The position numbers and the translations under genes are program-made. From assembly GCA_950097015.1 (NCBI GenBank), contig CATNEN010000007.1, forward strand, positions 992,001 to 1,056,000: a DNA stretch of 64,000 nucleotides, read 5' to 3'. Positions 27,701-33,700 of the stretch are shown piece after piece (within the stretch, counting starts at the first letter, position 1; every line of letters starts with the position of its first letter). The notes below the pieces were generated by a model. It saw nothing but the letters and a program-made list of their open reading frames with translations. It did not search any database and had not been told where the DNA came from. This stretch comes from Macrostomum hystrix. Lineage: Eukaryota > Animalia > Platyhelminthes.

Positions 27701-30700
27701 AACCTCCATTGTTACAATAATTCTGATATCAGATAAAACGAATACAATATTTCATGGCGCAAAGACTAGACATTCTAAAAATTCCTATGTGAATGTACAA
27801 TGGCGGTGAGATCAAAGATGAGATTAGACAACATAATAGTAATGTACAATGGCGGTGAGATCAAAGATGAGATTAGACAACATAATAGTAATGTACAATG
27901 GCGGTGAGATCAAAGACGAGACTAGACAACATGATAGGAATGTGCAATGGCGGTGAGATCAAAGATGAGACTAGACAACATGATAGTAATGTACAATGGC
28001 GGTGAGATCAAAGACGAGACTAGACAACATGATAGGAATGTACACTGGCGGTGAGATCAAAAACAATAGTAGACAATATGATCGATAGGAATGTACAATG
28101 GCGGTGAGATCAAAGACAATAGTAGACAATATTCGATAGGAATGTACAATGGCGGTGAGATCAAAGACGAGACTAGACAACATGATAGGAATGTACAATG
28201 GCGGTGAGATCAAAGATGAGACTAGACAACATGATAGTAATGTACAATGGCGGTGAGATCAAAGACGAGACTAGACAACATGATAGGAATGTACAATGGC
28301 GGTGAGATCAAAAACAATAGTAGACAATATGATCGATAGGAATGTACAATGGCGGTGAGATCAAAGATGAGACTAGACAACATGATAGGAATGTACAATG
28401 GCGGTGATATCAAAGACGAGACTAGACAACATAATAAGAATGTACAATCGCGGTGAGATCAAAGACGAGACTAGACAACATGATAGGAATGTACAATGGC
28501 GGTGAGATCAAAAACAATAGTAGACAATATAATCGATAGGAATGTACAATGGCGGTGAGATCAAAGACAATAGTAGACAATATGATCGATAGGAATGTAC
28601 AATGGCGGTGAGATCAAAGATGAGACTAGACAACATGATAGGAATGTACAATGGCGGTGAGATCAAAGACCGGACTAGACAAGATAATAGATGTGAAATT
28701 TCGACGAGAGTTAAGATAAGTCAAGACTAAACAATACGAATGACAGTGAGATTAGGGGCAATACAGCAAAATATTAATATTAAATTACGGAGAGATAAAA
28801 AAGAATTCGATGAGCAGATAAGTCAGAAGTTATTTTTTCTAATCACTAATCAGAAGACTGGCGAGTAATTTAAACGTTAGTTAAATTAAATTCTACATAA
28901 ATTTTACTCAATGTACGTGTTCATTGCCCTGCACCGCTTTCACTGCCTTCTCCAATTGCAGCGAGTGTCACAACTTTTCTGATCGCATCAAGGTTCGAGT
29001 TTGGTAAGTGTCTCATTTTTATAATCCATCAGTCTGATTGCATGTGCATGTAAATATACTGCTGCATTAGAAGAATAGCTACCGTGAAACCTTTGCAGAG
29101 CAATTATTTCAATGAAAATTTTGGATTGCGTCTATGCTCATTTTTACCTAATTTTTACTGCCACATGCATGCTTGTCTGGAAACTTCGCTATGTTATTTT
29201 ATAGGCGGTGTTATGAGGATTTCCGGTTCTTTATTATTATTTTGACTGCAACTCTGCTTATCGATATCAACGCGGCTCTGCAGGGATGAGGACAATGACC
29301 TGAAGTCGAGAATTCGTCAGAAACTGACTCGCGAGTCGGACGACTTTCTCGGTCAAACACTGATCGAAGTGCGAACACTGTCCGGAGAGATGGACGTGTG
29401 GTACAACCTGGGTAGGTCCGGCCAAGCAGTCCTCGGGGTCTCCGTGGGCTTCAGAACAGAACTTCCCTGGACATGCAGAAGCTGTAGCTATGAAGCATTG
29501 CTAGAAGCGAAACTAGAATCATTGCTACGAGCTACGAGATAGAATCGTAGCTAGAATCGTGGCTGAAATCTGAGAAGGAGCCATGAGAATTTTACCAACG
29601 GCTAAGATCGTGGCAGGTAGAGTCGGAATCTGTTTAGAAATCGACGTTCCAGTCATAGAGCTCTGGATCTAGAAACTGGAGAGAACCCCTATTTTTCCGG
29701 ACCAGTATGGGCTGACTGGCTGCAGTGAAAAATTTTCGGGCCAGCCAGTCAGCCTACACCGGTCCGGAAAACGGGGGTTTGTCGGGAGTTGTCTCCCCAG
29801 TTTCTAGATTCAGAGCTTCATGTTCCAGTCCAAAGGAGTTCTCCTTTCTGAAAGACGAAGGCTAGCGTTACCATGGTGACGGCCACACGGGAAAGGTGCC
29901 AATCAGTAATTTGGAAGCGGACAGTTCAAGAAGTTGTTCTTTTCTTTTTTCTTTGTCTGTCTGTCTTTGTCCTTTTGTCCATATAAAACAAGCCTATATT
30001 TTAGTGGTACGAGCGTAAGCACCAAAAATCCCATTTTCGGTGTGATCCGAGGCTCATTGCCTCCAGCATCTCCCTCACAGACGCACATAGCAGATTTGTG
30101 TTCCGCACTCTGCCACAGTCGCGATTGCACTTGAAGAGCACGCAAGCGGTAGCTTTGAATCCCGCAAACGTCTGCTTTAGCGACCACCCGCACAATCAGA
30201 GATCCAACAATGGAGAAGTGTGTTAGCCTCGCTGGCGACTCGTTTCGCACCCCTGTCTGCCGTGTTTTGCCTCATTTTCTCGACTTTTTTCGGTCTGAGT
30301 GTTCTGACGAACAAAAGAAACTACTAATTGCAAGCCGTTTAATTGCATCATTAATTAGTTAAACTGTCGATTTAGGCCTGATTTGTTGCTCCCAAAGTCT
30401 ACTCGTTACCATACAAAAATATTTCTTGAATATAATTGTTCAACTGTTGACAAGCTTTGGTGTACCTATCGATGTGCTCTTAAATGTTGACTATCTTGAT
30501 GTACATGCACTTTAGCTACGCAAACTTTTTGCCTACGATTGGAGAAATTTCTTATTTAACTTTACTTGTTGTTTAATTTTCTGTCTGAAATTCAAGTAGC
30601 TCTTTGACGATTCTGCAACTAAATTGAATCTGAAAATGTAATTGATAATAATCACAAAAGGGACGAGGACAATGACCTGAGATCGAGAATCCGATCCAAG

Positions 30701-33700
30701 TTGACCTCGGAGTCTGATGACTTCCTTGGTCAGCTGCTGTTGGAGGTCAGCAAATTGTCTGGAGAGATGGATGTTTGGTACACACTCGGTAGGTGATCGT
30801 CAAAGCCTTGGAATCTGCAAGTAGCAAGCTAAATATTTAGGACTGCGATATTCAAATTTGATTTCATCTGCTTATCACGCTTCCTTTTCTTTCTGGTGAA
30901 TAGGTCGGATGTTTTATCATTTTTCTCTCAGAAATCACAATTACGAGAAATCTAGACCTGTGATCCTGAATGGGATGCAAAATTTAAAATAATTGGTTAA
31001 GTTCTTTCAGTTATGATTGCTTCTCTGGGCCGACAGCTTATAGGGGATTTAGCCACCATTCGGTGCTAGGTGGGTGTCCCTGTTTTAAGGCTAAATTTAA
31101 AATAAATAATAAATCGTATTCACTTCATCGTTTTCGAAGTAAGGCGAGACGCTTTCGTCGGAAATAATCGATAGAACGTGTTGTGTGCGCCCACACCCTG
31201 TGGAGTGAGGTGGGATTCGGAGGGAGTGAGGTGGGTGTCCCTGCGAGTGGGTATAGAAAATCCTAGGCTGTATGCACGCCCCACACCCTGTGGAGTGAGG
31301 TGGGTGTCCCTGCGAGTGGGTACTGAAAATTCAGGGTTGTATGCACGCCCCACACCCTGTGGAGTGAGGTGGGTGTCCCTGCGAGTGGGTATAGAAAATC
31401 CTAGGCTGTATGCACGCCCCACACCCTGTGGAGTGAGGTGGGTGTCCCTGCGAGTGGGTATAGAAAATCCTAGGCTGTATGCACGCCCCACACCCTGTGG
31501 AGTGAGGTGGGGGTCACTCTAGGCTAGAGAGAAATTCTGAGGTAGGCAGTATTTTTGTTTTGTGCAGTGAGGTAGATGTCTACAACGAAAACTACTCGTA
31601 TTAAGTGATTGAAGTTTAGTACATTCATAATTTTGATTTTCTAGTATTATAGTCAATACGAGTATTTCTAATTATCAAAGCGTGCATAGTACTCATGGCT
31701 TTGCCAACAAATTTCTTGGAAACTACCCCTTAAAGTAAACGAGCATGCTGAATTACAATCACAGTTCGAATGAGTTTGCTTGTAAAAAGGTATTTAAGCA
31801 AAGCATTCCTTTCGTTTTATATTGGTAAAACATTAAGTGACATATGCACAAAGTTATTTAAAGTCATTTTCTTATCTGACTAAAATATTCTTTGTGAATA
31901 TATAATTGGTTGTTGTAACAATTTACTGTTGTGCTTGAAAATTTGTAGCGTGATCCATTTATTATACGAGCTATGTTGTCACGAGCCACGAGCTCTTCAC
32001 TCTTATTTAGATTTGTAGATTTTCTATGAAATTCTCAAAAGTTTTGTCCATAAGTCACAATGCTTCAAATCAGTGGCTGATATTCTCATTGGTTGTTTGT
32101 TCGCAGAGAAACGCACCGACAAGTCGCTGGTGTCCGGCGCTATCCGACTGCACATCAGCGTGGAGATCAAAGGAGAGGAGAAGGTGGCTCCGTATCACGT
32201 GCAGTACACGTGTCTTCACGAGGTCAGTTTTCCAGTCTTTCTCAAATTATTTCGCAGACAAGATTCCAGAGTCAAAAAAGGTCAGCGAAAGACTGGCATA
32301 TGCAACCTGTTGTCAACTCTCGCTCCAGAACATGTTTCACTACATGTGCGAGACTGCTCGCAATGAGGGCAAAGAAGAGGTCCAGCTACCGAGGGCCAAA
32401 GGCGAAAACGCATGGAAGATTTACTTCGAAGAGCACATGCAGGAGATCATTGAAGAGTTCGCCATGCGGTACGGCATAGAGAGCATCTACCAAGCCATGA
32501 CGTGAGTCGGTTTAATTCGGATAATATATATCTTAAGAGGCGGAAATTCTGTGCAAGCCGTGCTAAGATCGATTTACATGTAGGCAATCAAAAATTACAA
32601 ACGTTTTTCTTCTAAAATGTGATATTTTCTTATCTCGCTAGTGTATTGTCTACAAAGACAGGCCTACAAAAATTTCACTAACTTAGAGTGCTCGTCCAAT
32701 TGTACTTGAGTCACAAATTGGTACATTCAGACTCCTTCAACTTTTGACACACAGTAGCGGTTTGTTTCTCGCACTGCTTAGCCCCCGCGTGCCTCGGATA
32801 CAACACACAAACTTCAAGAGCTCAGCCAATCATTTCCCTGCAGGCACTTCTCCTGCCTAACCACAAAGTCGATCAGCACTGGAGTCCCGGCGGTGATGTC
32901 CACCCTGCTTGCCAACATCAACGCCTTCTATGCGCACAGCACAGGCACCAATGCCGTCAGTGCTAGCGATCGCTTCGCGGCGTCCAACTTTGGCAAGGAG
33001 AAATTTGTGAAGCTGCTGGACCAACTGCACAATTCTCTGCGCATCAGTCTTTCAGTTTATCGCAACTCATTCCCGGCTTCTCAGTCGGAGAAGCTGCAGG
33101 ATCTCAAATCCACGGTGGACCTGCTCACCAGCATCACATTTTTCCGGCTGAAGGTTCAGGAGCTCAGCAGTCCTCCACGGGCCAGCACAGTGCTGAAGGA
33201 GTGCGCCCTGAACTGCATGAAGACCACATATCAGTTTCTGTTCGAGAACTGCAACGAGCTTCACCATCGCGAGTTCCAGGACGGCGGTGGCGGAGGCGGT
33301 GGCGGCGGCGGTGGTGGCGGAGGCACCGGCGGCCACGTGGGACCGTCGCTTGACTCGCTGGATTTCTGGCACCGCCTCGTCGAGTTGATCATCTCCGTCA
33401 TCGAGGAGGATCGCAACAGCTATGGCCCGGTGTTGAACCAGTTTCCCCAGGAGGTAAACATTGGTCAACTGTCTGCGGCCGCCATGTGGACGCACTTCAG
33501 CCAGGATGTCCAGTTTGCGTTGGCTGAGCACGATGAGAAGCGACTGTGCAAAAGCTCAGACTACATGAACCTGCTCTTCAAGGTGAAATGGCTCTACAAC
33601 AAGTACATATCAGACGTTCCACCGCACAAGGGTACAATACCAGAGTATCCGCGTTGGTTCCAACCATTCGTCATGCAGTGGCTTAGCGAGAATGACGAAG

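Follow-up and report, generated by a model that had tools for sequence, protein, structure and literature searches.

Mutually exclusive exon pairs that arose by tandem duplication are well known as such: exons 5a and 5b of SNAP-25, like many ion-channel exons, lie next to each other, are homologous, have equal length and phase, and require that a single copy be included in the message. Proteins of the unc-13/Munc13 family also occur as isoforms that tune release probability and kinetics, namely UNC-13L and UNC-13S in Caenorhabditis elegans, Unc13A and Unc13B in Drosophila, and Munc13-1, Munc13-2 and Munc13-3 together with bMunc13-2 and ubMunc13-2 in mammals. To our knowledge, these isoforms vary in the N-terminus or are products of separate genes, the C2B domain being invariant within a gene. 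Here we describe a 64,000-nucleotide stretch of the genome of the flatworm Macrostomum hystrix (contig CATNEN010000007.1 of assembly GCA_950097015.1, positions 992,001 to 1,056,000; hereafter the window, in whose coordinates all positions are given) that carries on its plus strand an unc-13/Munc13 gene with two copies of the exon for loop 3 of the C2B domain. These copies, exon A (29284..29411) and exon B (30661..30788), probably constitute a genuine mutually exclusive pair that would give the gene two C2B sensors.

The position of the duplicated segment bears directly on the function of the protein. The C2B domain of Munc13 is a sensor of Ca2+ and phosphatidylinositol 4,5-bisphosphate (PIP2) that governs the priming of vesicles, the probability of release and short-term plasticity; we know of no model animal in which it is other than fixed within a gene, nor of studies of its tuning by means other than engineered mutants. 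The Macrostomum gene shares the C1-C2B-MUN-C2C core of the known isoforms and belongs to the same family; unlike their N-terminal or separate-gene variation, the A/B variation lies inside the Ca2+/lipid-binding loop. The A/B and SNAP-25 pairs resemble each other not only in layout but also in that each belongs to a gene of the neuronal release machinery and combines one conserved with one diverged copy; they differ in that A/B affects the unc-13 C2B loop-3 exon and that its use as a pair is predicted here from genomic sequence. In the literature that we searched, no description of mutually exclusive or alternative splicing at this exon of unc-13/Munc13 was found, an absence that is not proof. 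The arrangement thus appears new for unc-13, as an earlier reading made from the letters of the window alone (the sequence-only reading) had supposed, whereas the uniqueness which that reading implied did not hold, since, as set out below, at least four further lineages of invertebrates have tandem copies of the same exon.

Frame, age and constraint of the exon pair

The gene was identified from the order of its Pfam domains, C1_1, C2, MUN (in two exons) and C2 in successive exons, and from a 2032-residue unc-13 protein that is colinear with the window from 26641 to 36609. It is an unc-13/Munc13 gene with the domain order C1, C2B, MUN, C2C, the identity already proposed for it. A re-reading of coordinates and sequence likewise reproduced the proposed anatomy of the pair: exons A and B are each 128 nucleotides long, share the same phases (2 to 1) and the same G|gtaggt donor, and stand 1249 nucleotides apart. 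Exon A, the canonical loop-3 exon, begins after a ctgcag|G acceptor and encodes the strand residues TLIEVRT; exon B, the diverged one, begins after caaaag|G, encodes LLLEVSK at the corresponding place and ends in ..WYTL. Exactly two copies of the exon are present within the window. Either exon alone, set between its neighbours, gives an open C2B frame of 167 residues. Because both exons are 128 nucleotides long (2 modulo 3), inclusion of A and B together runs into a TGA at 30678-30680, 18 nucleotides into B, and skipping of both creates a TG|A stop at the 29003/32107 junction. A productive mRNA is obtained only with single inclusion, so that the claim that exactly one of the two exons is needed holds in full.

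A recount of the 42 codons agrees with the tally first given: 34 encode the same residue in both exons (16 identical codons and 18 with synonymous differences), 8 are replaced, and there is no stop or indel. The 36 nucleotide differences are distributed 7/6/23 over codon positions 1, 2 and 3, corresponding to identities of 72% for nucleotides and 81% for amino acids, and the likeness is limited to the exon and 3 nucleotides on either side, beyond which the flanks are unrelated. By the Nei-Gojobori method, the proportion of synonymous differences (pS) is 0.80, beyond saturation, and that of nonsynonymous differences (pN) is 0.14; at their synonymous sites, A and B are as far into saturation as Macrostomum is when compared with tapeworms or flukes. 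When 36 random substitutions were placed on either exon in 20,000 simulated trials, neutral change replaced a mean of 21.7 codons, 28% of the trials stayed free of stops, and none of the 20,000 replaced 8 codons or fewer. Even if only 18 neutral substitutions are assigned to one copy, the probability of 8 or fewer replacements together with no stop is 0.013.

The direction of change is equally telling. Exon A departs at only 3 of 42 residues from the usual protostome form, that of flukes, ecdysozoans and many other animals, and exon B carries these same three changes plus 8 more, so that all replacements since the split fall on B. The ratio of nonsynonymous to synonymous substitution rates for B is estimated at roughly 0.1-0.2 and not 1, which suggests relaxed or altered constraint and not neutrality. 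Saturated synonymous sites, a low pN and the location of every replacement on B together argue that B has long been maintained as coding sequence, and the pair is best understood as an old tandem duplication, not as a haplotype difference or a recent copy. The purifying selection that the sequence-only reading had proposed is thus upheld for both copies, a result with which a recent loss of B use is still compatible; such selection would require B to have been spliced in and translated for at least most of its history. Along the exon, the differences per 32 nucleotides number 4 and 6 at the two ends and 13 and 13 in the middle, and the sparser differences at the ends could reflect constraint from splicing signals or partial gene conversion.

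These comparisons bear on two other accounts of exon B. The genome has been reported as a hidden polyploid (PMC10468722), and an exon belonging to a paralogue or to the second haplotype might therefore have been misplaced into the intron during assembly. Such an artefact is highly improbable: 28% of bases differ between the copies, whose flanks are unrelated, B has the right orientation and phase, lies between the correct exons and possesses its own splice sites, and the same layout recurs in unrelated assemblies of other animals. Alternatively, the TGA encountered when B is joined to A would allow B to serve as a regulatory poison exon, which by way of the premature stop would lower unc-13 output. 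A poison exon has no need of coding conservation, yet B has kept 34 of 42 residues and all of the Ca2+-ligand motifs at saturated synonymous sites, and we consider this role very unlikely.

Several observations nevertheless weigh against a working A/B pair, and they concern the splice signals, the mechanism of exclusion and the distribution of the second copy. Among 12 acceptors of the gene that were examined, that of exon B is the weakest, with AAG in an A-rich context and a pyrimidine fraction of 0.40; the 11 others have CAG and pyrimidine fractions of 0.55-0.90, exon A standing at CAG and 0.55. No docking or selector RNA pairing between the introns exceeded shuffled controls (z -1.3 to +1.5) in what was a crude test carried out without homologous introns, a 19-nucleotide AT-rich complementarity between 29222-29240 and the B acceptor was no better than chance, and steric hindrance is ruled out as the exclusion mechanism by the 1249-nucleotide length of the A-B intron. 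Searches of protein collections with exon B, with a tapeworm fragment spanning the loop-3 exon and the next, and with the 281-residue MUN exon recovered no sequence from Macrostomum; the query with only exon B gave one unrelated match, and the best match to the MUN exon was 69% identical. Finally, three tapeworm and three fluke loci contained no second copy of the exon, even with diverged alternative exons included among the queries.

The acceptor can be read in two ways. Regulated exons commonly have weak acceptors, and the AAG of exon B, which is preceded by an AG-free stretch of 59 nucleotides, fits such an exon; it fits equally well an exon that was recently disabled. Exon B might then be a relic, that is, a long-working alternative exon that has recently gone out of use and now persists as an unspliced pseudo-exon. 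In keeping with this, B has the weakest acceptor of the gene, with no pyrimidine tract, and has taken all 8 of the 8 replacements, and an alternative copy of the same exon in another animal (L053, introduced below) has lost its GT donor, showing that copies of this kind can decay. We nonetheless judge a relic unlikely, though a good deal less so than the two accounts considered above, given that the frame of B is open, its AG is intact, its 7-nucleotide donor is the same as that of A and it has no indel; that its replacement divergence lies far under the neutral expectation; and that AAG acceptors also precede the alternative copies of other animals (L010, L040/L042), which are otherwise intact.

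Anatomy, frame logic, age and selective constraint taken together are what lead us to read A and B as a probable pair of mutually exclusive exons. The B-type helix of tapeworms and the parallel exon pairs of other animals, both described below, count in favour of this reading as well. According to this model, an old tandem duplication would have copied the exon that encodes C2B loop 3, its membrane-inserting helix and the next two strands, and each pre-mRNA would retain exactly one of the two copies, with A as the conserved default and B as the diverged alternative. Messages with both exons or with neither would be unproductive and would probably be removed by nonsense-mediated decay.

Predicted consequences for the C2B sensor

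The assignment of the duplicated exon to the loop-3 region of C2B, first made from the translated letters, is confirmed by comparison with solved structures of this domain in Munc13-1. Exons A and B both align over their full 42 residues with Munc13-1 C2B (6NYC chain positions 85-126), exon A matching the chains of 6NYC, 5UE8 and 7T7C with an E value of 2.8e-19 and exon B the same residues with 4.2e-13. In these alignments, residue R769 of Munc13-1 corresponds to exon position 13, the match to an arginine requiring that exon position 1 be D757. Inspection residue by residue verified what had been said of the two copies, namely that the DED and SDD motifs are kept, that the helix of B has one basic residue fewer, and that TLIEVRT in A is matched by LLLEVSK in B. 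More precisely, B retains both DEDND and ESDD as acidic motifs, K13 (the R769 equivalent) makes this position basic in both copies, and basic residues at helix positions 7-16 number five in A and four in B. Three replacements alter the helix (K7R, Q12S and R16S), of which R16 is the equivalent of R772 and Q12 lies beside the R769 equivalent, and five alter the strands (T25L, I27L, R30S, T31K and N41T).

Published work on Munc13-1 bears on the function of these positions. The helix of loop 3 lies in the plane of the lipid headgroups and is unusually basic (PMC8851502), and the R769E substitution in the C2B Ca2+-binding loop causes a severe loss of Ca2+-independent liposome/membrane bridging and of vesicle priming (PMC8648301). 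Like both Macrostomum exons, the C2B domain of Munc13-1 (6NYC/6NYT, 5UE8, 7T7C) combines the acidic motifs with a basic residue at the R769 position. Compared with the Munc13-1 mutants R769E, K706E and K720E, exon B is a natural variant that is without the charge equivalent to R772 and is altered beside R769; among the engineered mutants of PMC8648301, we found none that probes the positions at which B is altered. A C2B domain built with exon B would be expected to bind Ca2+ still and to dock differently on membranes, the altered step being the electrostatic attachment of the loop-3 helix to membranes that contain PIP2. Were B to be spliced in and chosen by particular cells, the priming of vesicles or the probability of their release would change in those cells by this biophysical route. 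Combination of the A/B choice with the alternative N-termini, as the sequence-only reading proposed, would be a further possibility.

If these predictions are correct, the gene would possess a priming switch that can be selected by cell type, one that may have been overlooked because the fly, nematode and vertebrate models are not known to have it, and the choice of isoform per neuron type would add a layer of synaptic diversity. The variants would moreover be sensors tested by evolution, with one charge fewer and the ligands kept in Macrostomum and, as described in the next section, with ligands lost in other lineages.

The loop-3 exon in other flatworms and in other invertebrates

Among 1.84 billion representatives in the sequence library searched, the best matches to exon B were tapeworm exons, and identity to B did not exceed 79% for any protein; no B orthologue was recognised in that library. 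The three tapeworm loci (Dibothriocephalus latus, Rodentolepis nana and a Logan contig; L001-L003) have a single loop-3 exon, whose helix, RSKLRSKLTSE, shows the three changes of B (K7R, Q12S and R16S) and, like B, uses a TCN codon for the serine at position 16, and whose strands are A-like. The three fluke loci (L004-L006) also have a single exon, of A type, with the helix KSKIRQKFTRE. Because the single exon of tapeworms has the same helix changes, the B-type helix is a working solution in nature.

How B came to share its helix with tapeworms can be read in more than one way from so short a sequence. Maximum-likelihood trees of the 126 nucleotides grouped A with B when all positions were used (72% support) and B with tapeworms when positions 1 and 2 were used (71% support), and an approximately-unbiased test on the same 126 nucleotides gave p values of 0.65 for A+B versus 0.35 for B+tapeworm. 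Single codons divide similarly: the helix changes and TCN serine codons at positions 16 and 33 tie B to tapeworms, and R9, I10 and L26 tie it to A. The codon for Ser33 is TCN in Macrostomum A and B and in tapeworms, and AGY in flukes and in the majority of the other lineages compared, namely L007, both copies of L009 and copy 1 of L010. The trees are compatible with either of two histories, and the common helix of B and tapeworms may reflect shared descent, with an ancient pair and reciprocal loss, or convergence. In the former case, the B type may be ancient within flatworms, tapeworms having fixed B and flukes A.

Outside Macrostomum, at least four lineages of invertebrates proved to have tandem pairs of the loop-3 exon. 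Two are represented by eukaryotic contigs in ENA assemblies, L009 (10052-10507) and L010 (355-994, with L011 identical). The others came from contigs of Joint Genome Institute (JGI) metagenomes, which were scanned with a back-translated query and gave 80 loci, 10 of them with two copies. In L040 (959-1084) and L042 (2335-2460), an ecdysozoan-type canonical exon is followed by a second copy that has gaag|G as its acceptor and G|gt as its donor; in this copy (NEHHD..PEGDE..) the acidic Ca2+ ligands are lost. The remaining lineage comprises eight loci (L053-L055, L058, L064, L066, L070 and L079), seven of them distinct, since L070 and L079 have the same exons, and in it the canonical copy is preceded by a strongly diverged one, which is 128 or 134 nucleotides long and lies between a cag|G acceptor and a G|gt donor, the donor of the L053 alternative copy being the one already noted as lost. 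Some acidic Ca2+ ligands are missing from the diverged copy of this lineage as well (e.g. DEDYH..EGND..). Among the 42-codon alternative copies of five of these loci, pN/pS was 0.08/0.44, 0.15/0.75 and 0.22/0.86, and pN for the canonical exon was 0.01-0.03, which indicates that purifying selection has kept the alternative exon across the loci compared. A rotifer origin was considered for L009, L010, L040 and L053-L079 and was rejected; the L053-L079 contig series may stem from annelid-host metagenomes.

All of these pairs resemble that of Macrostomum in involving the same exon in the same phase, with AG and GT at both copies and a canonical copy accompanied by a diverged one. In three of the pairs, the residue before ESDD is an arginine that one copy replaces, with serine in Macrostomum and with glycine or asparagine in L009 and L010. 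Macrostomum B differs from several of the other alternatives in retaining all of the acidic ligands, which they have given up (NEHHD..GDE, DEDYH..GND). A related observation concerns P0104, P0123 and P0142 and the members of their clusters, which are genomic exon variants with a proline before ESDD (..FTPESDD..) and which may represent alternative copies from further lineages. Many ecdysozoan-type loci, in which the three exons are fused, or which are transcripts, have the canonical form only.

Since the canonical copy comes first in some lineages and second in others, and the members of a pair share lineage-specific residues, the duplications in different lineages were probably independent. 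The Macrostomum pair belongs to a wider and apparently undescribed pattern, in which this exon was duplicated repeatedly in protostomes. We tentatively raise the further possibility, which is doubtful at present, that the loop-3 exon is a hotspot of repeated, independent duplication in protostomes that furnishes a splice-selectable Ca2+/PIP2 switch of priming, with a B type perhaps ancient in flatworms. Recurrence in several phyla would suggest a general selective benefit. Annotators are also given a concrete exon to seek, which is needed because annotation based on open reading frames or on a single isoform misses an exon copy.

Surroundings of the exon pair

On the plus strand, the C2B domain opens with an exon at 27467..27682 (Pfam C2, 1.7e-16; acceptor cag|G, donor TT|gtgagt) that encodes beta strands and the region of Ca2+ loop 1. 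A small constitutive exon upstream of the pair (28962..29003) ends in ..RIKVRVW in phase 2 (TG|), and a homologue of it is present in every related locus. The 1249-nucleotide intron between A and B (29412..30660) is unlike the other introns, and an intron of 1318 nucleotides (30789..32106) leads from exon B to the downstream constitutive exon (32107..32222), which starts with EKRTDKS.. and completes C2B.

The introns next to the pair contain repeats that are unrelated. The A-B intron contains a palindrome of about 170 nucleotides (29654-29822), with arms that are 87% and 74% complementary, resembling a miniature inverted-repeat transposon. The intron downstream of exon B contains 4-5 copies of a 69-nucleotide tandem repeat (about 31190-31567), which could break short-read assemblies of the locus. 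The window as a whole is very rich in tandem repeats, with long minisatellite arrays at 21160-22465, 23509-24412, 37530-38927, 51634-52808 and 58186-59778 that give rise to spurious open reading frames of 200-530 residues on both strands. Near the end of the window, on the minus strand (63399-63788), an open reading frame shows a motif of ZIP-type metal transporters (..GDVFLHLLPEA..), seen by eye only, which suggests a neighbouring SLC39-like gene.

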